This document shows positions 1,534-33,502 of a stretch of 64,000 nt of DNA, one piece after another. Positions within the stretch are counted from its first letter, which is position 1. Every line of letters starts with the position of its first letter. The stretch is from positions 212,357,741 through 212,421,740 of the forward strand of contig CM041465.1 of assembly GCA_023213395.1 (NCBI GenBank), written 5' to 3'. A model generated the notes under the pieces. That model was not told the DNA's origin. It searched no databases and saw only the letters and a list, made by a program, of their open reading frames with translations. A program made the position numbers and the translations under genes. This DNA is from Cycas panzhihuaensis (lineage: Eukaryota > Plantae > Cycadophyta).

Positions 1534-4216
1534 TTTTAGTGATTATATCGGAGAACCATCACCTCTTTTATTATTCCCTTTGCTTTATTCTATGATATGA
1601 TTTTCATGTAGACTTAGAGGTCTTACTTAGAGTTTTCTATTATTACAATGGAGGGTGGCCCTCGCTCCTTTGGTCTTTCAAAAAAGAATGTCTTCATAAG
1701 AGACATTCTTAAGTATGAAGTAGCCTCATAACTCTTAGCACTTTGTCATCCAACTTCATATCCTTTGGAATGAGATATAGTTTCATCCTCTTATCCTTCC
1801 ATTAGGCCTTTAACTATGATTTAGTCACCTATTATCTTTCACATACAAACCTCTTCAACTAGTTCTTCATCCTTAACTTAATCTATACTAGCCTTTAGCT
1901 CTACTACCTAAAATCTTATATATGCTTTAAGTTATAATATCCTTATATCTAAATTCTTAGGTTCCACATGAATACACTCTTTCCTTTAATTAGACTAGTT
2001 ATACTCCTATGTTATAGGAACTTGAGTTACTAATCTCTCTTCTTCTACTTCTCTCCCTTTCACATAAAGCTCACCTTTTGTATCATTAGGGGTACTTCCA
2101 TCAATCTCTTAATAAGTTTCAATACTAATTGCCACTACAATTTCTCTTGGTTTAGCTTAAATACCTCAAGACCTTAAAGCTCTTGTTGCTATGCTAAATC
2201 ATAAAATAAATCCTCAATCTTTAACTTTAAGGTATTAAAAACCTCAAATTAATATTAAGTCACTTCTTAAACCACTATTGTCATCACTTAATAATCTAAC
2301 TTCTCAAGTGGACCCCCCTTCTCATTTTAGATCAGGGCCTTCTTCTTTACTTACCCTGTCATAAAATATTTTCTCATAAAATCCCATAGAAGCATTAAAC
2401 CCCATGGGGGAAACTAGCTTTTAAGTACCTTTGTATGCTTTTGCTAACCTGTAACCTTATAAAATCCCTCAAACCCTATCTCAATTTAGTTCATTAGCTC
2501 AATTTGGTCCTACTTTTCTACCCCCATAGTTTAACTAGTTCTTAAACCCTTTTATATAAACTATTCAACCTAATTGGTCTATTGTGAGAGTCACACAACC
2601 CACTTTTACTTAATAAAATATCCCTCATAGGTTTTCTCTATTTAGAATTAATTTAGTTGTACTACATATTTCTTATCTTACCATGGGCTTGATAGTCCTC
2701 ACCCAAGGATTTTATAGGTCCTATATGGATTATATGAATAACTCTTCTACTAGAAATATTCAAATATCTCCTTATTCCCTTCTTATCCCTTCATTACCTT
2801 ATTTTAAAAGTACATAGGGAGAGAAAGCTCAAAATCATGTTCATGCCTTTTATTTAACATGTTCATAATGGCAACAAAATAATAATGTTCTTTGCCTTAT
2901 TTCCTCATATACACTTTTTCTATAGCCATATAGCCTAATTTTTTAATCTCATAAATTGACTAAGTGAATTTGAGAGGTATTTAAAAGATTCACTTATCAA
3001 CTTCCAATAATTAAAACTTAGATATCTAGCATCCTATTTTAAAATTTTTATTTTTGCTTCTATATATATTTTTAAGATCTCTACATTTATATATAAACTT
3101 CCAAGAAAGGAAGACTAATAATGGTTCTTTTTCCTCTAAGCTAGATTAAATGTATGACATAAAGACCCAATGGTATCCAAACTTAAATACCCATTCAAAA
3201 TGGAGGATGTGAGTAAAGAATAAGTCCTAAGCCATACTATTACAATCCTTAATAAAGCCAATACTTAAAACTCTATTATATTGTAGAAAACACTATGTTA
3301 CTAGTTATAAATCATCATTAACTCCATTAACACCACATCTAATAAATTAGTTAGTATTAGCAGGTCCTAACGATATGAGTATAGATGGTAAGATTACAAG
3401 TTTTGGCAGCAAAACTTAAGATAAAAATTAACAAAATGGAATTGACCATAGTTATCAAATCAACCAATATCAAGTAGGATGTCCCAATGAAGGACTTCAA
3501 AAATATCTAAATGACTATAAAAATCTAATACCTAAAGAATAAAAGGTCATAGGATTTCAATTATATTTCAACTACTTGCAATCTATGTACTTGTAAAAGG
3601 AGAATTTTTTTTTAAATAGCAATGCAATACCTCAAATTGTAGTAAATATCACACGAGATGAGGGTCTAGATTTAGTAAATGAAGCAGCATTTTCAACTAA
3701 TAAAAGTAGACAATAATGAGTAAGCTTGAGTGGCCATATTACACTTAAATAGCATAGTATATGAATGGTAGTAGTATATGAAATAGACTAGATATAAATT
3801 CTAACCTCCATCATAGGATATATTTTGTAATTTTATTCCTTAAATGATTTGAGACTATCGTATAAAGTTTAGAAAATTAAACATATAGATTTGGTAGAGG
3901 AGTATGACATGGTCTTTACCAAATTAACTTACATACTTGAGGATATACTTAAAATAATTAAATTATATATCAACAACTTAACCATATAGATTTAAGCAAA
4001 TATCTTGACATAAGAACCATTAACCCTAAATAAAGTTATGCAATTGGCTCACATATATGAGGATAAGGTTAAGTCCTTAAGCAAAGTTAGGTCTAGGATT
4101 TATATCCCCTCTTTTGCTTAGATAAGCATAATAGTACCTTTCCAAGTAACATGGTGAAGGAAGAGGCATATAGTCTTTAATAAATCTCTTAATCTAACTA
4201 ACATACTTATTAACTT

Positions 4217-4750
4217 TGTTGGAATATTAGATTTCATAAATCTTAATATAATGTTTAATTAGTGGATGAGTTGTCATTAGTCAATGTATAAAGGTTCTTA
4301 CATATGGCCTTATTGGTCAATTTATTAATATGATATCATTAATTGGTGATGTACTTATATCCTATTGGATATATATGAGGTGATGGATCTATAAATATGT
4401 ACATATATTAAAAGCATATTTAAGATGAGATAATAAAAGAGACCTAAGCTCCACCTATCTCTTGTGGGATTTTCCTTCTAACATTTTCCACATATAAATC
4501 TAGTGTCTTATAATAGTATCCTTCCTATGTGTGAATATTATTATATTAATATGTATATATCTTCATTTAATATACTTGATGATTATCTTAAACACCTCAT
4601 GAATGATTTATATTTTATTTATTATTCATATAAATTTTATGTTAATATGAATACTCCATACAATCTTACCTACTTAGATTATATAAGTTACTATCAAAAT
4701 TTTAATTATGTATTAGAACCTATACAAGAATTTTAGTATGGTATCAGAGC
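4217..4750 (+). mobile_element. LTR-like segment followed by tRNA-iMet primer-binding site
   Basis: Starts TGTTGG at 4217; perfect TGGTATCAGAGC at 4739-4750. Partner LTR not found. Confidence 0.5.
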
Positions 4751-14500: not shown

Positions 14501-17500
14501 TCAACAGTGATCCCCCATATTCAACCTAAGTAACCCAGGCCTCTAAAAATTCCTATTTGGATTTGGATATCTTTTTTACTAGATGAATTTAGAGAATGAG
14601 AATAGTTAATCAAAATAAGATCTATGATAGGCAAGGTCATCAAGTTAGACTCAAACACTTTAGACCATACTACTAAGGGGTGGCTAAAGTGTGTGTCAAG
14701 TTAGATATGACTAAGCTGCTAAAAGAGCCTTTTTTTATTAAAGTTGTAAATATGTCCATTTAAATTAACCTAGACTACAAGAGAGTTCCCTTTAGATGGT
14801 CTGCATATCATAATATTAGGCATGTTCATAAAGTTTTCTATTTATTCTAGGCCTCTCTTAATTTAGACCCTTGGAGAGATGAAGATGTCCTAGACTAAAG
14901 GCCCCCCTCTTAGTCAAATATTAGTGAGGTCAATAAGAAAAAGGAGTATCTGGTACGAAACAACCCCATTAATATTGAAGAAACAATATAGTCTCACACA
15001 GAAATGACCACCCATTGTCAGCATATAACTGTTCCTTAGGAAAGAGAAGGAGGAAGGTGGATACTAGTCACCAATTAGATGCGAAACAAAGGAAAAGGCC
15101 ATTTTATGAGTACTCAATTCCTGCATTTAGATTTTAATGATTCTAGAGATCAATTAAAGAAAAGGATGAAGGTAGCTTCGCATACCTAAGGACAAGCACA
15201 TGAAGTAGTTGTTATGCCCAACTCTGGAAATTCTTAAGAGAATTTAGATGACATGCTCATGGAGGAAGCAAATTTGTTGAAGCATGTACTAGAAACTCAA
15301 TGGTTAAAACCTTCTAAGGAGAATTCTCATCAAACTTAACAACATGTACCCAATAATGAAGATGCCCCACACCATACCTAATTTAAATCTTTAGCTCATA
15401 TAAATTCCTCTCGACCAAATAGACAAAAATAGCATTTTAGTAATAACTTAGAATATTAGGGGTATCGATGCTCCCCACTTTCACAAACATTTGGAGATAA
15501 AGTGTATAGTTTGACATCGTCATCCTCATTTTTTGGTTTTGATAGAAACTCATATAGTATCCAATAATGACATAAGGCACACCACTCATAGTATATAGCC
15601 TTCGACTCAATGTAAATCAATTATTTCATGCCAATCCATCAGAGATCTATGTATTTTCTAAAACAACCAGTGGAGGATGCTCCAGTATATTACAAGTCCT
15701 TTTCAACATTGGTTATGCTTGAAATTGAAAAAGGATCAAGATCATTTTGTTTGTTGGTTTATTAGAGTTTATGCCTCTACTAATGTTCAGGTCAAATACA
15801 ACTCTTGGCAAGTTCTAGTAAATACCCTTCATAACTATTAAGCTAAACATGACCAGATTTTACTTTTGGGAGATTTCAATTTTATGGAATATCCTAATGA
15901 TAAATAGGTGGTAAGTTCAAAAGACCTTATCAGAAGGATAATTTGATTTTTTTTTTAACTTAAAGATTTTTTAGGTCTTTCTGAACTTCCTTGAAAGGCC
16001 CCCCTGAGGTTTCTCTAGACCAATAATTAAGAAGGGAGCAGCCGCATTATGGAAAGACTAGATAAAGCTTATATTTCCAATTCGCTCACCCATTTAATTG
16101 CCTAGTATCAATATATTTTGGTGAATGTAATTATGATATCTGATTATATTTCCATTAAGATCCATCTATTCTCTAGAGTTAATTATCTCGTTATAGAATG
16201 ATAGTTTTTAAATTTAACATAAACTTACTCAATCTAGAGGATTTTAGGAGAGCCCTTCAACATTTGTCCAAAGAACTATATACTAACATATATACTATAG
16301 ATAGTCCCGATGCTCGATTGATGATGATTATGAAGAGCCTTAAATCTCATATTAAGATGTTTGGCAAAAACTACAAATATTATTTTAAATATCCCAAGGA
16401 TTTCTTACTTACTATTATTCGAGATTTGTGAAAGTAGTTTGAAGAAGATAAAGGTCCAACTAAGCTTTAATCAAGGCTTGCAAATTTAATAATTTTTGCT
16501 CATGCAAAAGTAGGAAGATGGAAAATAGAAAACATGGTTAAACATTCAATGGAAACTTCATGTAGATCAGAACTCAAAAACTTTTAACCACTATGCAAAA
16601 GTAATGCAACATTAATAGTCATTGAAGTTCTTGTAGGTCCCCCCTTTGGAAATTATGTATTCTCATCATAGAATCCAATCTGAGTTTTACCATCATGTCA
16701 AAAGACCGTGGACCACTCAGGGATTCTCTCTAAACAAATCTAGAGTTATTCAAATTGTTCTCTCAAATATGAATCCTATTTTGGAGGAGTGTCATAGAAA
16801 CCTCAATGCTTCTCTTACTAGATCGATCACTAAGGAGGAGGTCCACAAAATTATGTTGAAGCTTCCTAAAGGCAAATTTTAGGGTCCAAATGGAATGCAT
16901 GTTGAGCTCTTATTAGCTATAGATTCTAAAGAGGTTCCACATCTATTAGTAAAAGTAGTAGAAGAGGTTCATCAAATAGGTAGAATGAACTCAACTATCG
17001 ATGCAACCATGGTTTCTTTGATTCCTAAAAGTAGTATTCCTTCCACCATCAATTAGTAGAGACACATAAGCCTTTGTAATTCCTCATATAAGATTATAAC
17101 TAAAGTTCTAGCAAATCAGCTTAAAGAGTTCCTTCCTTAGGTTGTTAATGAGAATCAAACAACCTTTATAAGAGGTCATCATATAGCAAATAATATAATT
17201 ATGATCATTAGCCTCTTCATACTATATGTATAAAGAAGCAACAAGCTACTATACTCAAATTAGACATCAATAAATCTTATGACACTGTGGAATGGGATTT
17301 CCTTCTTGTTATTCTCACTCAAAAAGGTCTTCAATCAGACCACATTAATTAAATCAAAGCTATGATCTCTTTGGTTTCAATGGCTATAGAAATTAATGGC
17401 TCAACTAATGGCCTTATTTACATGAGTAGAGGAATTTGTCAAGGCTATCCCTTATTGCCTTATCTTTTTCTAATTGCTATGGAAGGCCTCTCTTCTCTTC

Positions 17501-18849
17501 TTTTATGGCTCAAGTCAATAGATCTTCTCTAAGGAGTCTCTATTGATGGATCTGAGATTACAATGCACCAGATTTTTGTAGATGATACCATTTTGTTAGG
17601 GCACACTTTGTATATAGAAATTGGTGCCTAGAGCTAAGTGCTTAAGGTTTTTGACCTTGTAGCAGGGATGATAATTAAACATAGTAAATCTAGCATTATT
17701 TTCAATGAAGTAGAAATATAGATACAATCCACTTTGGCATTGCCTCTTGGCATTCCTATTACTCCAAGATCCACTCTTTTCAAATATCTAAGCATTCTTA
17801 TGGGCCTCTCAAGATTAAAATTTTTTTACTAATGACCTTATATTTTGAAAATTAAAAAGAAGTTGGATGTTTGGCCTACCAGATCCCTTAATTTAGCCAA
17901 TCATCAGAGTTTTAATAGAATTAACTCTTTTCTAACTGCCAAATTACCTAATGTCCATTATTCAAGGTCCCAAAGTTGTATTATTAATAATTTGAAGTCT
18001 TCTAATAAGATTTCTTTAGAAACCATGGTCTGTTAATTTGAAGACCTTTCACCCTATGAAATAGAGTACAGTGTCAAATTATAAAGGTTAAGGCAGCCTT
18101 GGTGTTAAATATCCATTTATTTTAGTAAAGGTGAGAGGAGCTAAGCATCTATGAGACCTTGGGAATAAGGAAAATGATAAATGGACCTATATTATTAGGA
18201 GGAATTATTATTTTACAAACTCTACTAAATAGTAGTTAGCTACAACTAACTATCTCAATAAGGGATCCTCTATTTGGAATTATATGTTGGTAGCCTGGGA
18301 TAACTTACACTATAATACTCTTTTTTCTCTATGAGAATAGGCATATGCATAATGTAATCACAAAATCATAAAGTATGTAATCATATGTAACAAGATAACA
18401 CTGCACATGTACACAGATTGACAAGTGGAAAACCCCTTCTAGGGAAGAAAAACCACCTCCTAAAGTTCTAGTTTTATTAAGAATTGTTATAAACTGAAAA
18501 GCAAATACGTAAACCACCTAACACCTAAACCATCCTTTGAAAAGGCATCAAGACAGCCCTCCTAGATTCATGGAACTAACTCCTTGAATCTAGGAGATGA
18601 ATATATATAATGAAAGGTTCGTTGAAATGCAGTTCTGCATTTCAACCACCTTTCACATAAGATAAATTAATAAACATTAAAGTTTAAACATTAAAATAAC
18701 TTAAATATATATTTAGACATGTGACTAAAATATAACCTTTCAAAAGAACATAAAGATTACATTAACATTCTAACATCCCCCTTTAATGTAAACTTTTGTG
18801 CTGTAGAAAAAGAAGGTCTTCATCACGATGATCCTCCTTTGATGGAGAC

Positions 18850-21800
18850 TTCTTTTATCTACAACAGATATCTGAGATTTAAAAACTTTGCTTCAGTTAA
18901 AGACTTCGTAAGAATGTCAACAATTTATAAATCTGTAGAACAATAAGACAAAGAAACTAGATTATCAGTAACTAAATTATGAATAAAATGTTGATGTAAT
19001 TCAATATGCTTAGTCCTAGAATATAGAACTGGATTTGTAGCTATAGTAATTGCACCTTGATTATCAACTTTAATTTCAATGGAAGAGTTTAGAGACAGAC
19101 CAATTTCATTTAGTAAAGATTTTAGCCAAAGTGCTTCTTTACCAGCTTCAACAAGTACACGATATTCTGCTTCAGTTGTAGATAAAGCAAGTACCTACAG
19201 TTTCTTACTAGACTAGGTAATAGGTGAGGAATCTATAAAAAATACATAACCTGAAGTAGATTTATGATCAGCTATATCACCTGCCTAATCAGAATCAGTA
19301 TATCCAGTTAACGTTAGTGGTTTATTACAAAAATTATAAGTTAAACTATAAAACACAGTATGCTTTAGATAATGTAAGATACGTTTAGTGGCTTTCCAAT
19401 GAGATTCATGTGGTTATTGCATATAACAGAACATAAAGTAATAGCATAAGAAATATCGTGGTGGGTGTGAGTTAGATAGATAAGACTAGCAATTAGTTAT
19501 CTATATAGTGTAGGATCACATAAAGGTGATGAACAATCAGTAGATAGCTTAACTCCTGATTGTAGCAGATTAGATATAGGTTTAGTATTTTCCATGTTAA
19601 TGCAATGAATTAAGTCTAGAATATACTTAGGTTGAGATATTGTTATATTTGAATGATTTTGATAAACTTGTAAACCAAGAAAGTAATGTAATAGATTTAA
19701 ATCGGTCATTTCAATTTATTTATTAAAGTAGATTTTAGATGATGAATACTATGTATTGATGATCCAAGAATGATAATATCATCAACATAGAGGATTAGAA
19801 TAGTAAGATTTTTATTTTCACGCTTAAAATAAAGATTTGGATCACTAATACATCTAGTGTATACAATGTGAATTAAATAATCATTGACTTTAGTATACCA
19901 AGCTCAAGGAGCTTGTTTTAAACTGTAAATAGATTTTTTAAGTTTGCAGACTAAATTAGGATTTTCAATAAATCCATGTGGTCAGTAACATATAGATCAC
20001 TTCCTTGAGATCATTATTCAAGAAAGCACTCTTAATGTCCATTTGGTGGATTTTCCAACTCAACTTGTCGCAAGGGCAATAATTATCTTGATTGTATTCA
20101 TCTTTGCAATAGGGGCAAAGGTTTTATTATAATCAATACCATCTATTTGAGAAAATCCTTTTGCAACAAGGCGAGCTTTATATTTTTTAACTGTGCCTAT
20201 TGAGTTATATTTAATCCTATAGACCTATTTATAGTCGATGATATTTTTCTCAAGTGGGAGAGGAACAAGATCCTAGGTTGAATTTTTATTTAAGGCATCA
20301 AATTCAGTCTGCATAGCATCATACCATACTAGATTGTTGCTAGCTTGTTTAAATATTTTGGGATCATTGTTGTCTATTATTTTTGGCATTAAGTAAAATT
20401 AGCATATAATTTTACGCATGTGTATATCCGGTATCGATGGGTTTACCTACATCGGATCCGATCGTAAGCATTTTGGTTGCCCAAATAGGTTACCTATGAT
20501 TAACTGTATCTGAAGATACAAGTGGATTAGATGAACTAGCCTGAAGAGAAGGATCTATTTCAGTGGGTTCAGATAGAGTCCAATTTTGGACTTGAGTTGA
20601 TAAAGATTCTATAACTTTTGAATCAGCTTGTTTTTCAGAAGGGTTAACCAAATAAGTGTTGGTTAACAAATTTTCAACAGGAAGTTCTACATAAGTAGAT
20701 ATTGAAGAAGATTCTTCTTCATCAAATATTACATCACGCAAAATAGAAATATTATGCATGACTGGATCTAACAGTCTATAAGCTTTAGTCTCTTCACTGT
20801 AACCAACGAAGATGTATTTTTGACTTTTTTGTCTAACTTTTTACGTTTTTCGTGAGGGATATGTCCCCACGCAATACAGCCAAAGATTCATAAATGATTG
20901 ACAGATAGTTTTCTTCTAGACCATTTTTGTTCTAGAGTAATGTTCTGTAGACATTTACTAGGTAAATGATTTAATAAATAATTAGAGCAGTTAATTGCTT
21001 CTGCCTATAATTTTAAATCTATATTCTTTATATGTAACATGCAATGAGTTATCTCAACCAAAGTATAATTTTTGCATTCAAAGAACATTGTTTTATTGAG
21101 GTGTATATGCAATGGAATGTTGGAACCGAATTCCGTGTGATTTGCATAAAGAAGTAAATTTTCCACTTAAATATTCCTTAGCATTATCAGATTGAAATAT
21201 TTTGATTTTTAAATTTAATTGATTTTCAACTAACGTTTTATATTCAACGAAAATGTCAAACACTTGACTATGTGTTTTGAGCATGTAAACCCAACATTTT
21301 CTTGAATAATCATCTATAAATGTAACAAAATAACGAGAACATGAGTATGATGTTACATAAAAAGGTCTACATATGTCGAGTGAGCGGTTGCTCGAATTGA
21401 GTTTTATTTGGAAATAGATCCATGTGTTGTTTACCTATCACACGTGCTTTACAAACATCATAAAGATTGAAGGGTGGTAAACCATGAACCATTTCATGCT
21501 TCTTTAAATATTGTAATTTATCATAACTTGTATAGCCAAATCTTGCATGCCAAAGTTTGCTAACCGAGTCGATTGGTAATAAAGGTACTAAAAGATTTTG
21601 TTTTGTTATTTTGAAGACTTGTTAGACTATAGAGACATGTTATGATCAATGTGTCCTAAGACAATACGTCGAATTTATTTAATGGTTCCTTAATGATAAA
21701 TTTATTTTTCTAGAATTCGGTGATAAGGTCTTTCTGGCAGATTTGATAGACAGAGAGTAGGTTTTGTAACAAACTGTGCACGTAAAAGATGTCCTTGATT

Positions 21801-22999
21801 GAACCATCTTTTAAAATAATGTCACTTGATCCTTTAACTTTAAGTTGATTATCGCTTAGAAAGAAATCTCTTCTTCAAAGTTCGTGTCAGTTGATAAGTG
21901 GTTAAATTTTTACGATGTCCGGTCATATGATGGGATGCACTAGAGTCAAGGATCCACCGTGGTGGATTATTTGAAGGGCCAACAAATGCGAAGTTGTTCT
22001 TTGTTAAAGGGCGATTATGGGATTGACAATTTTGGGTTCGTGATTGAGAATGGGATTGAGGTTTATTTTGCAACCTCGAAGCTTTCCATGCTTCTGAAGC
22101 TATTCTACTTCTATAGATATCAATACTATGGCCTATTTTATGACAGTAGGCACAACTAGTATTCGAGAAGAAGTTACGTTGTTCCTATTATGAAAGAATT
22201 GATTACGAGTATTCGGTATTTAGTTGGACCGTAATATTTTACATTGTATTGTGAATTAGACGGTGAACCTCTATGAGGTTTTTGAAACTTTGGATTACTA
22301 TAAAAATTGTTCTATTATTTATTTTAAATTATGACTTAGTTTTAGAAAATAAAACCCGTGAAGGATCTTTTAATGCTTTGTTTGAATTAACATTGTCTGA
22401 TGTTCAATCAGCTGATTTGTCAACTGATTGAATGTTGTAAGTGGGTTGTTAGCTTGTTGTCCGCGGTTTGTAGAGATTAAAGTATTTTGGTAGTTTGTTT
22501 ACTGCAAGACGTATGAGTGTGTCGTCATCTTTAGCATGCGTAGTTATTTTTTCAACATTATCTTCTTTGGTTTTAAACTTGATAGAGTTATCTAGATCTT
22601 TATTAATTAATTAAATTTTAGTTAAAAATCCTTAACATTAGAAAATCATCAAAAGTAAGTTTATATAATTGCTATTCTAAGATAGACACTTAATGTGTAT
22701 CTACCTTATCATATTTTTCTTGCAAGGTTTTCTAAACAAAGGCTAAGTCATCTATTCGTAAACCGACCGATTTCTAGTGAGAGTGAGTTTAATATAGTGC
22801 CTAAGGCGGATCTCGATTCATCGATATACCATATAACTCTCTATAGCATCCGCTTTTAGTTTTAAAATTCACATGTCATATATTGCCATATCTTTTCTTT
22901 GTTTAGGCGATGGGATATGCGATCCCTTCAGTCGGCATAGTTTAAGCTGGTTAATACTGGAATTGGGATGCAGGTGATTGTCCCTAACATTAATGCCAT
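18850..22999 (-). pseudogene. Copia gag-pol (gag, protease, integrase, RT, RNase H), disrupted
   Basis: Probable gag start MALMLGTITCIPIPVLTSLNYAD at 22999; CAYCHKIGH knuckle; WILDSSASHHMTG protease; FQSDNAKEY...HSIAYTPQ integrase; YKARLVAKGFSQ, HQMDIKSAFLN and MTDLNLLHYFLGLQV RT; TKHIELHQHFI RNase H; many TAG/TAA stops. Confidence 0.93.
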
Positions 23000-23582
23000 A
23001 TTAGAAGTGTTGAGATTTGATTGTAGATTGAAGATTTATGAAGGTGATTGGAAAAATAATCACTTAGTAAAAAGTACTATTCATGTTAATAGATATAATT
23101 CAAGAAAGTATTCTCGTATGTATTAATTGAATTTAAGATAAAAAATCATATGTTTGTAGATAGATGAATAAACAAATGACCTCTTAAAACATTGCCTTAA
23201 GCAATCCCTTTTGATAAACAGTCCTCTTTGAAGTCCTCTTTGATAAATAGTCCCCCTGTGATAAACAAATTAGTTGCCCTTACTCTGAACAAATGAAAAG
23301 TCCCCCCTTAATTAAAACAGTTCTAATAAAAAAATTCCCTTTAAAAAATAAATGTTTGCTAAAAAAGGTTTAAATTCTAAGAATATGAAATTAAAGCACT
23401 TAATTATATGTTGTAATTGATTTAGTTAAATGCATTAAGATGGCAATAACTTTGAAGATATCAAACTAATTTTTAAGATATTAATTGACCTTAAATAATT
23501 AAGCTTTATTATGAAAAAAAAGAGTATATAAATATAAATTAAAAGGTATTGAATTTAATATCATAGAGTTTTAATAATCTAG

Positions 23583-23650
23583 GTATCAGATATTAAACTG
23601 ATAAGAATAGATGCTACATTTGATCTTAGCTAAAAAACTAAGAAAGGTAT
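23583..23650 (-). ncRNA. U2: U2 snRNA 5' fragment (about nt 1-68), degenerate, inside the copia leader
   Basis: Minus strand reads ATACCTTTCTTAGTTTTTTAGCTAAGATCAAATGTAGCATCTATTCTTATCAGTTTAATATCTGATAC versus recalled plant U2 ATACCTTTCTCGGCCTTTTGGCTAAGATCAAGTGTAGTATCTGTTCTTATCAGTTTAATATCTGATA. Differences are transitions. No Sm site or 3' half. Confidence 0.9.
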
Positions 23651-23681
23651 ATATATAATCTTATAATGAGTGTTTTAAAGG

Positions 23682-23733
23682 TTATATATACCTTATATAT
23701 AACATATAAACAAATAGAATATATAAGTAAGAT
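23682..23733 (-). promoter_or_regulatory. Possible decayed plant snRNA Pol II promoter (USE plus TATA) upstream of the U2 fragment
   Basis: ATCTTACTTAT at -83 to -73 (USE consensus RTCCCACATCG) and TATATATAA at -40 to -32, separated by 32 bp. Poor match in AT-rich sequence. Confidence 0.3.
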
Positions 23734-23859
23734 ATTAGTTAGGGGGGAATAGTTTACTTTGATTTTATAAATAAATGTGATACTATATAAGGAGGGAAAG
23801 ATTTTGTAATGACTAATTAAATGCCATACATTAAAGCAATGTTGATTTTAAGTACTAAA

Positions 23860-24125
23860 GGTTAATTGAAAGAGGGGGAGATATAAATTTTGATTTGTAA
23901 ATGAGAGTTTATAATGTAAAAGGGGGGTTTATATCTTAATGTAATAAGGGATTATGTGATTTGTTTAAATCAAAATATGACAAGGGGGGCAGGGGGGGGG
24001 GGGGAGAGGAGGAGGGGCATATGTTTCATTTAAATCAAAATTTGCTAAAAGGGGGGGTTAGGTTTTATTTAAATTAAAGTATGATAAAAGGAGGGGGGGC
24101 TAATGTTTTATTTAAATCGAAATTA
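23860..24125. repeat. Degenerate tandem repeats of about 40-45 bp with G runs
   Basis: Recurring AAAAGGGGGGG...GTTTTATTTAAATCAAAAT-like units. Confidence 0.65.
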
Positions 24126-24909
24126 AAAAATAAAAAATAAAAAACCTAAACCTAAACCGATGGACGAACCCGATGGAATTGTTGATTTTAGAAAACAAAA
24201 TCAAATTGGAAGATGTATTGGGGTCCGAGGGGGGTAAGGACGAAAGATACCCTACTTGTCAACAAGAGTTGCAGAGGTGGTGATGGCATTCTTCCTTCAT
24301 TGTTTATAGGTGAGACGATGGAGAATGACGATCAAATCAATCTGTTCAAGGTTGGAGAGGTAACCACTCTCACTCCTTTCAGTGTCTCTCTTCTTCTGTT
24401 ATTCGGTTCTCGCTGGCTTGGCTTGTCTGGTCTCTTCAGTGATGGATGTAGGGCACTTCCCTGAGGCAATCTCTCTTTTGATGGTGGTTCTTTGCCTTTG
24501 GCCATGTGTGACTACAGTTCCTCTTCATCCGTTGCGGGTTAATAGTGATGGAGCGCCATGGATGGTTTCTTTGGAACGACGACTCTCGATCTTCCTCCGA
24601 TGGAATCACCATGCTTTTGGCATTCTCGAATTTTATTTGGATTGCAATGGTCTAGTTCTTACCCTAGCCGTTATCTTTGCTTCCCAAAGATGAGGGTTAT
24701 GCCCTAGTTTCCTAGTCTCTTCTTCAAAGATGATGGTTTAAAGCGGCACGTCTAGTTGCAGATTCAGAATCTGGAAGGGCACCTTGAATTTCCTTTTAAT
24801 GGCACATATACTCTGCGTGACATCTCTAGGTTGTATTGAGGATTTCAAAATAAGAGGCACTAATGGCATTTCAGGGCTATACTGCATCATATTTGGCAGC
24901 AGTGTGGTG

Positions 24910-25337
24910 TCAGAAGTACATAAACTGGGTTCTTATTAATATCCATCATCATGAGAAAATCGTCCTAAAACTTGGCTGATTCTATGGCAGGTAATCTTCT
25001 CAGGAGACTGGAAACTTACCGTAACAATGAATTTTCATATGGGATTTCTCCTCTTTGCATAGCCAATAGGAAGTGATGCAAAACTTTAATGCGACTGTTC
25101 AGCATTTTGATGGCACTATGAATGCTTATTAGGTGCGCAGCCAATTGAGTAGTTGTTGAGCCTCCATCTGAGGGTTTGAGGTGTGCTACATGATCCACAA
25201 AAATTTGCTCTTCCTCCACGGTCTCTATAGAATAGTTTGACCTAACAAATATTAGACATGGTACTCCATCAATAACATGCAATTCACTCTTATATATTGT
25301 TATTTGCAAATTCTTCTAGGTATGGTTGATTGCGGTG
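24910..25337 (-). pseudogene. CSN6: Captured, intronless, circularly permuted COP9 signalosome subunit 6 fragment
   Basis: Translates AINHT*KNLQITIYKSELHVIDGVPCLIFVRSNYSIETVEEEQIFVDHVAHLKPSDGGSTTTQLAAHLISIHSAIKMLNSRIKVLHHFLLAMQRGEIPYENSLLR*VSSLLRRLPAIESAKF*DDFLM then MMDINKNPVYVLL. Closely matches plant CSN6 as recalled (VDHVAHLKPSDGGSAATQLAAHLTGIHSAIKMLNSRI). Three CAG/CAA-derived stops. Confidence 0.93.
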
Positions 25338-27410
25338 GTTCAAACAGTTTGTGCAAAAGACCCGAAATGCTTCTCCAGACATCAAATGCTTCTTGGCTGA
25401 GTTAGGAGGTTTCAAGCTTGAGACAACAGTCCTTTACACAGCTTAGGGCATTTCACACATCTGCCAATGAGTTGTGAGACATCTCTATAGGTTCACATTT
25501 CTGTGAGGAGTGTGCAGTATTTTGAGAACAATATGCAAGCAATTTTTGTATGTCCTGAAGAAGGGAAAGGATCTAGATTAAGCTCAAGCTCTGATACCAT
25601 GTGAGAATGGGCACATGCACAATGTAATCATAGAATCATATAGTATGCAATCATAGGTAACAAGATAACACTGCACATGTACACAGATTGACAGGTGAAA
25701 AACCCTTCTGGGGAAGAAAAGCCACCTCCTAAAGTTCTAGTTTTATTAAGAATTACTGTAAACAAAAAAATGACACGTAAACCACCTAACACTTAAACCA
25801 ACCTTTGAAAAGGCATGAAGATAGCCCTCTTAGATTCATGGAACCAACTCCTTGAATCTAGGAGATGAATTTATATAATGAAAGGTTCATTGAAATGCAG
25901 TTCTGCATTTCAACCACCTTTCACATAAGATAAATTAATAAACATTAAAGTTTAAACATTAGGATAACTTAAATATACATTTAGATATGTGACTAAAATA
26001 TAACCTTTAAAAAGAACATAAACATTACATTAACATTCTAACATTCTCCTAGTTTAACTAGCCATCATATCAATTTTTGAAATAGCAAGTGGCTACCTAT
26101 AGGGTTTCCTCCCTTAGGTAGTTAAGAGGATTTTGTTCCTTTAGCTCATTTTCTTAGTTCCCACAATTGCTTTACTATGGCTCAATTTCATGATTTTGAT
26201 TAGCTCTATTAGAAGGATTTTATCAGTCTTTTAATAGAGTTCAACCCTCAGCCTAAAACTTCTCTTTCATAGATGGTAGAAAAGCTTAATTTTTTCACGA
26301 GGTAAGTTGATCCTCTTCTTGCCTCTCAGGAGTTAGAGAAAGAGGAAGGTACAAGGTTTCTCTCTAGGGGTCATGTGTTTAAATCCACTCAATTTTAATA
26401 CTTGATTGATAGTCAACAATTTTGTCATACTTAGCTCTAAGTTGAATGGGGATGGATTTGGTGGAAATAAGCTCAATCCAAATACAATGTGCTTCAATGG
26501 AGGATATTGTATAAGGCCTTTATTTTCCAAGACACTTGGGATCACTGAAATGTAGGTCACTAATCATATTGCATAGTATGTGGTGCCCAGGAGGATAGTT
26601 TTGATCACATTTGGTGGCATTGTCCTTCTATCTAAGATATTTTGTACATTGTCTTTTAAAATTTCAGTTTGGACCAAGGTTTCGTTGAAATTTATAATGG
26701 CAACTTACTTCTCCATCCTTGGTTAATCAAAGGGAGCTAGGTTGCGACTTATATTTGGTTTGCAACTTGTCGACACTTAATAGACCTTTGGTTTCTATTT
26801 CTTAAGACCACATTGCATGACATTTAGAAAATCCATACTACAACTTATTTACAAAAAGTAGTTTTGTCCTTTAATCAAATTCTTAGGTGCATAAGAAAGG
26901 ATATTTTATTATAGTTATCTCACAATCCTCGCTTCATCCCTCTTCAAAAAAAGTTCAAGAAAAATTTACATTATGATTTTGTGATTTTGAGTGTTCTTCA
27001 TGTAAAAGAATGGATAAGTATGGCTATTTAATTTTTGGGTTTTCCCAGCTCTTTATATTGTAATTAAGACTATAATTCAATGATATCTATTTTTTCACCT
27101 TCATACACATACACATACATAACACTTAAGGTATTGATTAATATTATGGTATATATTATTATATTATTATTGAATTATGTATTATTGCTATTACACATAC
27201 AACCTGGTGCTATATTATTCTTCGATGCAGTGTGCTTTTGCTATGAAACTATATGATATTATTGGGTTGACTCTAGGCACATATAATAACTCTCAATAAT
27301 ATATTTCTCCACCTATAATAATATTTTAAGGCTAGCTCATATCAATAGAGTTTAGAGGTATGTGGGACTAATATTCACCATAGGTGACTTATATATTATT
27401 AAACCTTGTT

Positions 27411-28595
<1,185 letters not shown>

Positions 28596-28999
28596 TTTTC
28601 TTCATTATAGATATAAGAATCTTTCTTAAGCAATAAAAAATTATGTACGATGTCAAATTAAGGTGCAAATAGATATTATATTCTAAATGAAGGTGCATAT
28701 AACTATTATATCTACAATATAAGCAATATTCATCTCATATGACTTAGCAAGACTTGGGTAATCAGATGCACATATCTTTTGCTAATTATTGCTTTAAACT
28801 TAACTTGTAGGTCTTGTTTATTTCATGACTATTTCATAGGTCTCATTTGTGACTATCAATGTTATAACATTTGATGATTGTGGAATCACCCTCTAACGAA
28901 TGTGAGATGTCATTAGTTTATACTTTCCATATTGATGCTAAAGTAAGTTAATATAAGTAATCTTACTGATTTCAGAATATGTGATGTGTGTGTGTTTGT

Positions 29000-29039
<40 letters not shown>

Positions 29040-29053
<14 letters not shown>

Positions 29054-29235
29054 AGAGAGAGAGAGAGAGAGATAGGACATGGTATGTATATATATAGAGC
29101 GAGAGAGAGATAGGACATGATATGTATATACGGAAAGGTTCAGTTGCAATGCTAATACATACATATATAGAATGAGAGAGAGATAGGACATGATATGTAT
29201 ATACAGAAAGTTTCAACTGCAATGCTAATACATAC
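29040..29235. repeat. Short tandem repeat GAGAGAGATAGGACATGATATGTATATA, 3 copies with variable extension
   Basis: Three copies at about 29060, 29100 and 29175. Confidence 0.8.
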
Positions 29236-29550
29236 ATAGTTTGTTTCTGATGTCAATACATGCATAAGTAGGCTTATTTTGACGTAGGGGTACAATATGA
29301 CTGTGACATCTATGTAGTCTTTTTTTTTAACAATACATATTCATACTACATGGTACAACTTTAACATTAGCTCAATTTTAATTATATATATACACTACAT
29401 GGGTTGTGTTGTTTAGGTTAATTTAGATGGTTTAATAATATATATTTGCACTATAAAACTACAAAGCTAGGTCAATTAAGATAGCTGATATAAATACAAT
29501 GATCAAAGATATATATGCATCTAGAGATTTGATGTATAAGATGCCAAGGC

Positions 29551-29551
29551 C

Positions 29552-29602
<51 letters not shown>

Positions 29603-29805
29603 ACATATATATACATACATACATACACATCTATATATGTATATATACATATATATGTATGTATATATACATATGTATATATGTATATACATATGTATAT
29701 ACATATATATATATATGTATATACATATATATATATGTATATATGTATGTATGTATATATATATGTATGTATATATATATATAGATAGATAGATATATAT
29801 ATGTG

Positions 29806-29859
<54 letters not shown>

Positions 29860-29903
29860 CACATATCTATATATATATGTATATGTATATATATGAATAC
29901 ATC

Positions 29904-29957
<54 letters not shown>

Positions 29958-29982
29958 TATACATATGTATATATATATGTAT

Positions 29983-30035
<53 letters not shown>

Positions 30036-30037
30036 TA

Positions 30038-30073
<36 letters not shown>

Positions 30074-30116
30074 TGTATGTATATGTATGTATGCATATGT
30101 GTATATATATATATGT

Positions 30117-30205
<89 letters not shown>

Positions 30206-30261
30206 CACATGTATATATATATATACATACACATGTATATATATATATACACATACACATG

Positions 30262-30354
<93 letters not shown>

Positions 30355-30640
30355 ATATATATGTATGTATATATATATGTATGTATGTATATATGTATGT
30401 ATGTATATATGTATGTATGTATATATGTATGTATATATATATGTATGTATATATATAGATATATATATATATATATATATATGTATATGTATATATATAT
30501 GTATGTATATATGTATATCTATATGTAAATGTATATATATATCTATATATAGATATATATATACATATAGATATACATATACACATACATACATATATAC
30601 ACATATATATATATACATACATACATACATATATATATAC

Positions 30641-30675
<35 letters not shown>

Positions 30676-30816
30676 CATACATATATATATGTACATACAT
30701 ATATATATACATACATATATATGTATATATGTATATATATATATATACATATATATATATACATATATATACATATATATATATACATACATACATACAT
30801 ATACATATACATATAC

Positions 30817-30849
<33 letters not shown>

Positions 30850-30867
30850 TATATATATATATATAGA

Positions 30868-30899
<32 letters not shown>

Positions 30900-30900
30900 G

Positions 30901-30931
<31 letters not shown>

Positions 30932-31079
30932 CACACACATACACACACACATACACACATACACACACATACACACATACATACATATACATATATATAT
31001 ACATATACATATACATATATATATGTATATGTATATGTATATATATATGTATATGTATATGTATATATATATGTATATG

Positions 31080-31124
<45 letters not shown>

Positions 31125-31194
31125 GTATCTATATATATATATATATATATACATATATATCTATCTATATATACATATATATCTATCTATATAT

Positions 31195-31245
<51 letters not shown>

Positions 31246-31292
31246 TACATATATATATATATGCATATATATACATACATACATATATATGC

Positions 31293-31370
<78 letters not shown>

Positions 31371-31483
31371 ATATATATATATACATACATATATATATAT
31401 ATATATACATACATATATATATATATATATACATACATATATATATATATATACATACATATATATATATATAGATATATATA

Positions 31484-31517
<34 letters not shown>

Positions 31518-31518
31518 C

Positions 31519-31599
<81 letters not shown>

Positions 31600-31859
31600 C
31601 ATACATACATATATATATATATACATACATATATATATATATATAGATATATATGTATGTATGTATGTATACATATATGTTTATATATATACATATACAT
31701 GTATGTATATACATATACATATATGTATATGTATATATATATATGTGTATATATATACATATATATATATACATATACATATATGTATATATATATATAT
31801 ACATATATGTACGTATGTATATATATATATACATACATATATACATATATGTACGTATG

Positions 31860-31900
<41 letters not shown>

Positions 31901-31907
31901 GCATATG

Positions 31908-31938
<31 letters not shown>

Positions 31939-31991
31939 GTGTGTGTGTGTATATATATATATATGTATATATGTGTATGTATGTATGTATG

Positions 31992-32035
<44 letters not shown>
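29551..32035. repeat. Compound microsatellite (TA/TACA/TATACA/CA)n, about 2.5 kb
   Basis: Directly visible. Confidence 0.98.
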
Positions 32036-33502
32036 TAGTTAATATAAGACAGAGGTAAGAAGAGGAGACAATTATGAGTTTATTACCATAGAGTGGGATT
32101 AATGCTTTGATACTAATTATTATGAATCAAAGTTTATAATTTGAGGACATAATCACAATCATAGAAGAAAAATATATATGCACATAAATTACTTTGAATT
32201 ATTTAATGGTTAAAGGCCAAGTAATAAATTAATGAATGAACAATAATACATGTTACAATGGTCACACAAACATATACATGATATAATGTTTATTGACAAA
32301 TGGGTGCAACCATTCAAATATGTCTTTTAATAATAATTAGATAATTAATCATTATTAATTAGAGTCATAACATACACACAAATATTCTTTCATTATTCGC
32401 AAAGACAATATTCCTTATAGAAGTGAGTTTTATTCATTTATTCTAAGGATTATCTCAGCTTTAAGTATTTCCTTAAATTAAAAGAGTAAGGCCCCCTTCT
32501 CAAGTAAACACCCTACTTGCCTTATTTTAACAATTTTCATATATATAAATGTTTCCACTATCTTTTTTTTTTATTAACTTCTTGGTGGATAATTATAAAA
32601 TCATATGTAACAGTAAGTGTTATACCTCATAAATACATTTTCTTATCACCTTATTGATAGATATAAGGTGATGTATAAACCTTTTCATAAACCTTGTATA
32701 TTCAATATAAGGACATCCCAAAAGAGGAGGGGACTTAACCACTATACAATATATCTTATTTTACTACTTGCCATCCCCCATTTTTGTTTTATGCATTAGT
32801 TATCCCAAACAAAGGGTAAGCATTAACACCATGCAAATCTTGTTTTACCACTTGATTCTCCTGCCCTCTCTACTCTTAAGGTGATTATATAAAGTTTTCC
32901 TATATTCCAAGAAAAAATTCATTATGCAACATATCTTGTTTTACTATTAATTACCTCTCATTTCTATTCCATGCATTGATCACCTCAAAGAATTCACTTT
33001 ATATTAATTTTCTTTCACTGTTTACACCCTTTTAGGAGTCCAAATAAAGAAACGTAAATATAATGCATCTACCATTCAAGAGTTCTTTTTTTTTGTTTTT
33101 GATTTACAATGAGACATTTCTATCAATTGACATAAACAATTGCCTTCAATATACTCTCTCATATGCCTTCATAGAACTATGGAATGGGTGGGATACTACA
33201 GAGCAAGAAAGGAAATTTTAAATTATGTGCTCTAACATCTAAATTTTAAATGCATAAATGAAAAAAATTATGTCGAGTGATTGTAAAGGTCTATGGACTT
33301 TCAAAAAAAAAAAAAAAGAAAAGAAAAGAAAACAAAACAAAACAAAAGAAAAGAAAAGGAGGGAAAGGCCACGGAATCTGCCAGCTCTATGTGCTTTTCT
33401 GTTTTTGGATTTATACTTTGTGATGGCCGAATATGACCCAAATCACAAGTCGAATGTAAATTCTATACAAAATGCGTTGCCAGAGGAATGCCGTAAATTT
33501 CA

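Follow-up and report, generated by a model that had tools for sequence, protein, structure and literature searches.

Pseudogenes derived from circular RNAs (circRNAs) have been described in mouse and human, although the mechanism of their formation was called 'mysterious' (Dong et al., 2016, Cell Res, PMC4897178). The best comparison for the present study is provided by the mouse pseudogenes derived from circRFWD2, which lie within the ERVK element MMERVK10C (Dong et al., 2016). Here we describe a similar copy in a plant. We analysed a stretch of 64,000 nucleotides of the cycad Cycas panzhihuaensis (contig CM041465.1, positions 212,357,741 to 212,421,740; hereafter the window, in which position 1 is the first letter). 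Its minus strand carries a long terminal repeat (LTR) retrotransposon of the Ty1/copia type, and the leader of this element contains an intron-free and circularly permuted piece of the gene for COP9 signalosome subunit 6 (CSN6). This piece is probably a copy, made by the copia reverse transcriptase (RT), of a 429-nt exonic circRNA in which CSN6 exon 7 was back-spliced to exon 3 (residues L126-M268).

The CSN6 insert has much in common with the circRFWD2 pseudogenes. Both are intron-free blocks of several exons with a back-splice junction (exon 6 to exon 2 in mouse), both contain exons of the circle only, both lack a real poly(A) tail, both occur in many copies, and both have internal LTR-retrotransposon sequence on either side (MMERVK10C-int in mouse). 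Three of the four features of Dong et al. (2016) are present at the CSN6 locus, namely a non-colinear junction identical to a back-splice, content restricted to circle exons, and a processed state without poly(A). In contrast to the mouse case, the carrier is a plant Ty1/copia element instead of a mammalian ERVK, and it can be read as a whole, including target-site duplication (TSD), LTRs, primer-binding site (PBS) and polypurine tract (PPT), with the insert in sense orientation in the leader. The CSN6 sister copies also differ from the mouse pseudogenes in showing more than one turn of the circle, with terminal redundancy. Furthermore, the circRFWD2 circRNA is known to be expressed in mouse, whereas the CSN6 circle is proposed here from DNA sequence.

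Partial intron-free host transcripts within LTR elements are also the product of LTR-mediated retroposition (Tan et al., 2016, PMC5131818), for instance in maize Bs1 and in the plant cases reviewed recently (PMC13317346). However, these cases derive from linear mRNAs with their exon order kept, and microsimilarity at the switch points is their hallmark; after the 3' end of the CSN6 insert there is a weak 9/13 match. CarSV retroviroid DNA (PMC11722881) likewise results from a plant circular RNA that was converted into DNA by the RT of a retroelement and fused to the element by template switching, in CarSV at short homologies. Yet CarSV is a viroid-like RNA bearing ribozymes, it uses the RT of a pararetrovirus, and it involves no circle of host exons and lies outside the LTR retrotransposon families. 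Retrozymes are another example of plant circular RNAs that serve as templates for the RT of LTR retrotransposons (PMC11722881). They differ from the proposed CSN6 circle, a spliceosomal product and a passive passenger, in that hammerhead ribozymes and tRNA ligase close their circles and in that the retrozymes are mobile elements in their own right.

In the literature searched, no report of a plant circRNA-derived retrocopy was found. Of two reviews, one from 2022 on circRNAs in plants makes no mention of pseudogenes, and one from 2026 on the capture of genes by plant transposons (PMC13317346) mentions neither circRNA nor small nuclear RNA (snRNA). Within this literature, the CSN6 locus appears to be the first plant case of a circRNA-derived copy, with an unusually readable carrier. 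The initial annotation of the window, a reading of its letters only, had presented such a fossil as not known to be described in plants; this still stands for the plant literature searched, but the kind itself was already known from mouse (PMC4897178).

The CSN6 insert occupies positions 24903-25343 on the minus strand. It reads LNPAINH...FLM / (L>M)MDIN...VYVLL(NP..), with three in-frame stops and one frameshift. Minus-strand translation of 25345-24880 gives ..TTAINHT*KNLQITIYK..ENSLLR*VSSLLRRLPAIESAKF*DDFLM (asterisks mark stops), followed by MMDINKNPVYVLLTPH; past DDFLM, the translation continues with MM, DINKNPVYVLL and TPH. The central 99 amino acids match the Pfam domain MitMem_reg (2e-11) and plant CSN6 proteins (1e-42), with identities of up to 82%, the best value being reached against seed-plant proteins. 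Residues 138-268 come first and residues 126-140 follow, without introns. A search of the whole window with full-length CSN6 (tblastn) recovered residues 141-268 and 126-140 only, and none of residues 1-125 and 269-313. No A-run follows the 3' end of the insert.

Comparison with a CSN6 cDNA-like contig (L002) reveals the same arrangement at the nucleotide level. Insert positions 28-411 correspond to positions 492-875 of this contig with zero gaps (384 nt), while insert positions 415-451 correspond to its positions 450-486, the stretch just upstream of 492. Hence, the CSN6 copy lacks introns and its order is circularly permuted at the joint 24950/24949, and the 384-nt gap-free match implies that all four internal introns were removed precisely.

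Exon borders were read from plant genomic CSN6 genes in metagenome contigs (tblastn with flanking bases) and from protein models that read through introns. The contigs share a common exon structure, which was found in moss-like (L024), conifer-like (L034), crucifer-like (L020) and grass-like (L035, L041) sequences as well as in legume-like ones (L010, L011, L018, L036, L037, L042). Exon 2 ends at A125 (GCT/gtaagt) and exon 3 starts exactly at L126 (..cag/CTG ATG GAT or ..cag/TTG ATG GAT), the acceptor cag/ directly before L126 being read in L018, L020, L024, L027 and L028. Exon 7 ends exactly at M268 (TTG ATG/gtgagt, CTG ATG/gtatgt), with a donor ATG/gt(g/a)(a/t)gt after M268 in L010, L018, L024, L028, L034, L035, L036, L037 and L041, and exon 8 starts at E269 (..cag/GAG TAT). 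Both the L126 acceptor and the M268 donor are canonical and in phase 0; the splice sites were read in at least nine contigs, which range from moss-like plants to angiosperms. The protein models break, for example, at ..FFIQ/LMDVNES, ..LLQ/LTDINES, ..RRK/LMDINEC, FQDDFLM/VCTH.. and ..ENIQ/EYNDTLL. Several public CSN6 models (P0004, P0006, P0016, P0054, P0101 and P0265) are mis-annotated in that they read through or skip introns, and serve as indirect intron markers.

Between L126 and M268 the genomic genes have four introns, located after S156 plus 1 nt, after E177, after Q203 plus 1 nt, and after the first base of G235. All land-plant lineages recovered have these introns in their genomic CSN6, and the insert has none of the four. 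The exon-wise matches of the insert to genomic loci break at 25285/84, 25223/22, 25144/43, about 25051/50 and 24950/49. Accordingly, the insert can be divided, on the minus strand, into the 3' part of exon 3 (25285-25343; L138..S156 plus 1 nt, with the border AGT G/gt in genomic loci), exon 4 (25223-25284; E157..E177), exon 5 (25144-25222; T178..Q203 plus 1 nt), exon 6 (25051-25143; L204..first base of G235), exon 7 (24950-25050; G235..M268, ending at the position where genomic contigs have the donor) and the 5' part of exon 3 (24903-24949; L126..about P140), which in sister copies extends 12 nt further, through AINH. Matches to exon 7 stop at 24950 and matches to exon 3 restart at 24949/24948, which places a back-splice-type joint at 24949-24950, where the end of exon 7 meets the start of exon 3.

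Given the splice sites at L126 and M268, the donor of exon 7 meets the acceptor of exon 3 at the joint 24950/24949, an arrangement that corresponds to the back-splice junction of a five-exon circle of 429 nt. By a rough estimate, the probability that two randomly placed breakpoints both coincide exactly with exon borders is ~7e-5. The letters at the joint are ..gat ttt ctc atg / atg atg gat att aat.. (FLM/MMDIN). Exon joining predicts FLM/LMDIN, and the length at the joint is as predicted, without insertion or deletion. Contigs ranging from those of moss-like plants to those of flowering plants share these borders and, by phylogenetic bracketing, CSN6 of the host should have the L126 and M268 borders as well. 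These results bear out what the initial annotation had read from the sequence: a real, intronless CSN6 fragment on the minus strand, permuted at this joint. The length of 143 codons from LMDIN to FLM that it gave for Arabidopsis CSN6 agrees with the count from L126 to M268 (143 codons, 429 nt), and its suggestion that FLM/ is an exon donor and /LMDIN an exon acceptor, with several introns skipped in between, was borne out in plant genomic CSN6 contigs.

Two further observations concern the CSN6 sequences themselves. Within exon 7 of the copy, at 25016-25024 (minus strand), a change from a Gln codon to a stop creates cgGTAAGTt, a perfect 5' splice-site consensus, which is probably due to chance. 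In addition, the conifer-like contig L034 holds at 3887-4629 a genomic CSN6 pseudogene, in which introns are present and the reading frame contains two stops (GEIP*ENSLLR*VSS). The stop in LLR*VSS, common to this contig and the window, was considered as a clue to the parent gene and rejected: the stop, at the Gln codon of LLRQVSS, is TAA in the window and TAG in L034, the C>T changes are parallel, and the two sequences are 82% alike.

Sister copies of the insert were sought in contigs of four public DNA runs, which were compared with the window over 24200-25800; statements on copy number refer to these contigs and not to reads. In three organisms (A, B and C), contigs that are 85-98% alike extend over the insert and across its two borders. 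The 5' border is crossed by record 22 of run X4 (over 25271-25394), and the 3' border by record 4 of run X1, record 12 of run X2 and record 21 of run X4. The joint 24950/24949 is covered in three organisms, and record 11 of run X2 spans it (24769-24979) with only four differences. Because independent contigs cross the joint, it does not result from misassembly. Within one run, as many as 6-8 distinct contigs lie over a single insert position. The presence of several diverged contigs with both borders indicates that the chimera is multi-copy and that the family kept transposing after the capture. Diverged contigs (85-90%) with common switch points in organisms A, B and C are also the pattern by which Tan et al. 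(2016) recognise secondary retroposition, and the TSD of the window copy itself fits transposition after capture.

The sister copies also show how the insert originally ended. In three organisms they lack base 25336, and the 5' end then reads TTG AAC CCC GCA ATC AAC CAT, which is LNPAINH in frame. They also have 12 extra bases at 24902, after which the 3' end follows the CSN6 mRNA through NPAINH. Relative to its sisters, the window copy has therefore gained 1 nt at 25336 and lost 12 nt at 24902. These ends point to an ancestral insert of ~450 nt, or ~1.05 turns, with the same ~21 nt at both ends (NPAINH twice). The initial annotation had regarded the 428 nt between CACC direct repeats as almost exactly one revolution. 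This spacing is present in the window copy, but one exact turn is not ancestral; we reject the CACC repeats and the exact 428-nt period as ancestral features, since both are private to the window copy. Likewise, entry and exit at one and the same microhomology is unsupported, given the ~1.05 turns of the ancestral insert. A comparison of family members with and without the insert, also proposed in the initial annotation, could be made on one side: insert-bearing contigs were recovered in organisms A, B and C, but an insert-free joint was not. In organism D (run X7, a small run of 285 Mb), contigs match at 24313-24491 and at ~25354-25800, while no contig covers 24524-25333, that is, the CSN6 insert plus 380 nt after it, and no contig bridges the two parts. 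Organism D may represent an insert-free relative of the element family.

The carrier is a complete but dead Ty1/copia element at 18330-26043, on the minus strand. It is bounded by identical 5-bp TSDs, TTCTC at 18325-18329 and at 26044-26048, directly outside the LTR ends. The 3' LTR (18330-18775) and the 5' LTR (25600-26043) are direct repeats with an identity of 93.2%, gaps excluded. A PPT, AAAGGGGGA (18776-18784), adjoins the 3' LTR, and the PBS, TGGTATCAGAGC (25588-25599), directly follows the 5' LTR; the letters of both were read directly. From general knowledge of copia elements, we take this PBS to be of the initiator tRNA-Met type. The region between 18785 and 22999 contains decayed gag, protease, integrase and RT genes in copia order, with many stops. 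Pfam matches were obtained for Pol_BBD (21852-22073), rve (21096-21284) and RVT_2 (19500-19709), all below the curated cut-offs because the open reading frames (ORFs) are broken; the gag N-terminus begins at ~22999 and a CCHC-like knuckle lies near 22130. With two LTRs, a 5-bp TSD, PBS, PPT, an RT of the RVT_2 type and the domain order gag-protease-integrase-RT, the element has the characters of Ty1/copia, the assignment that it had been given from the start. The window copy is an old, dead member of its family, with an intact TSD, LTRs that are 93% alike, and an insert with three stops and a frameshift.

How would a circle end up in such an element? According to the general model of gene capture by LTR elements, RT switches between co-packaged RNAs (PMC5131818; PMC13317346). 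We have good confidence in a variant of this process with a circRNA as the second template. We infer that the junction came from a circle and not from another scrambled-exon RNA, and that the switching took place in a virus-like particle. The leader of LTR elements is copied late in minus-strand synthesis. Back-splicing of CSN6 exon 7 to exon 3 would first have produced the five-exon circle of 429 nt. During minus-strand synthesis through the leader, RT would then have moved from the element RNA to the circle, entering it near H144. It would have copied backwards through exon 3, across the back-splice junction into exon 7, through exons 6-4 and into exon 3 again, making ~1.05 turns, before leaving the circle near L138 for the element RNA. 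Switches in this direction and order would yield a permuted, intron-free copy fixed in the leader in sense orientation, the orientation that is seen. The chimeric element then spread by further transposition as a family.

Several points weigh against this reading. The exon borders were read in CSN6 contigs of other plants, and the CSN6 locus of the host is not among them. Directly after the joint there is an ATG in place of a Leu codon, a difference that requires 1-2 substitutions; the homologues have CTG, TTG, CTT or CTC for L126, and 1-2 substitutions in a decayed copy would explain the ATG. The end of exon 7 and the start of exon 3 share TGATG, which might have guided a template switch. The similarity between the insert ends is not significant when taken alone, as it was reached by 386 of 2000 shuffles, and becomes convincing only against the cDNA. 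A joint that skips the insert, as expected of an empty element, was absent from the contigs over 24200-25800. The public runs matching the stretch were all DNA contig sets, with no RNA among them and none with half of its words, and a CSN6 circRNA was not found in the literature searched.

An alternative explanation, unlikely but the best of those we weighed, might be that RT copied a linear RNA with the same 7-3 junction. Such an RNA could stem from a tandem duplication of exons 3-7 in the host CSN6 gene or a paralog, or from trans-splicing or exon repetition, and a 450-nt stretch of it could have been captured by two template switches. It predicts an identical splice-exact joint and the same loss of introns, and since both borders are in phase 0 the mRNA would be in frame. 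The captured length (~1.05 units) is special under neither model. However, duplicated or permuted blocks are absent from all of 303 CSN6 proteins from across the land plants, and those full-length models that are longest are intron read-throughs. Moreover, a linear mRNA would have offered residues 1-125 and 269-313, which are absent.

A jump of RT between two linear CSN6 mRNAs at the (C/T)TGATG microhomology, followed by expansion of ATG to FLM-M-MDIN, is highly improbable. It draws on the observation that in most plants exon 7 ends with ..TG ATG and exon 3 begins with CTG or TTG ATG, on the switching of LTR-element RTs at microsimilarities of ~6 bp (PMC5131818), and on the ATG in place of a Leu codon after the joint. 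Yet such a jump would leave a single LM, whereas the copy has kept both LM units, with a length exactly equal to that of end-to-end exon joining; six bases would have to be gained by slippage from a single ATG. It would also need at least three switches on one gene, with the ~21-nt overlap of start and end arising by accident. Least probable of all is a rearrangement of DNA after capture of a linear retrocopy (a tandem duplication and two deletions, or a circular DNA intermediate) or an assembly error. In its favour, the leader is a mosaic that has been rearranged and contains variable segments (joints at 24301-24641), and the insert of the window copy has a small indel at either end. Against it, each side of the breakpoint coincides exactly with a splice site, the borders and the joint region recur in independent contigs of three organisms, and two independent deletions would need to end within ~21 nt of each other.

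The CSN6 insert is not the only foreign piece in the leader. Since gag begins near 22999, the leader between the PBS and the gag start (23000-25587, minus strand) measures ~2.6 kb, far longer than copia elements need. The insert lies ~245 nt downstream of the PBS, in element sense, and shares the leader with sequence of unexplained origin, a low-complexity stretch rich in C and a U2 snRNA, which is represented by its 5' part. The latter, at 23563-23650 on the minus strand and thus in element sense (Rfam RF00004, 66.7 bits, E 9e-12), comprises approximately nt 1-67 of the snRNA and, in addition, a short 3' remnant. Its presence in the CSN6-bearing leader, in the same sense, shows that further host RNAs were copied into the leader too. 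A scan of 17500-27000 against Rfam by E-value detected U2 only, and no hammerhead or other self-cleaving ribozyme motif. The ORFs in the remaining leader (24216-24890) gave no Pfam matches. The segment 24301-24641 is variable, as sister copies lack 24512-24640 (115-129 nt) and have ~18 other bases in place of 24360-24430; the window copy thus holds extra material within this segment relative to its sisters.

Two repetitive stretches complete the picture. A run of similar units at 23700-24200 (minus strand; 'ttaaataaaac..cccccc..tttt', C-tracts in an AT-rich context), between the unexplained part of the leader and the U2 piece, may be a short tandem array. Directly beyond the element, at 27290-32060, lies ~4.8 kb of microsatellite of the (TA)n/(CA)n/(TG)n type, with long spurious YIYI ORFs in all frames.

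Our interpretation would extend circRNA-derived retrocopies from mammals to plants. A carrier that can be read from end to end supports a concrete route, in which the RT of an LTR element switches onto a circle, makes more than one turn and switches back, where the mammalian work had left the route 'mysterious'. The insert would also record a five-exon CSN6 circle in an ancestor of at least three of the sampled organisms. This has a practical side, as any transcription of the element in genomes with several copies of the junction would lead to circRNAs being called falsely for the parent gene. A broader proposal, which we hold tentatively and on which we are almost evenly divided, is that copia virus-like particles in the very large genome of the host may regularly take up exonic circRNAs, copy them round the circle and fix the copies in leaders. 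If so, multi-copy genomic 'back-splice junctions' would arise that mimic circRNAs in RNA-seq, and copia leaders would be a heritable archive of ancient circRNA isoforms, in which the circle of CSN6 exons 3-7 is one clean entry.
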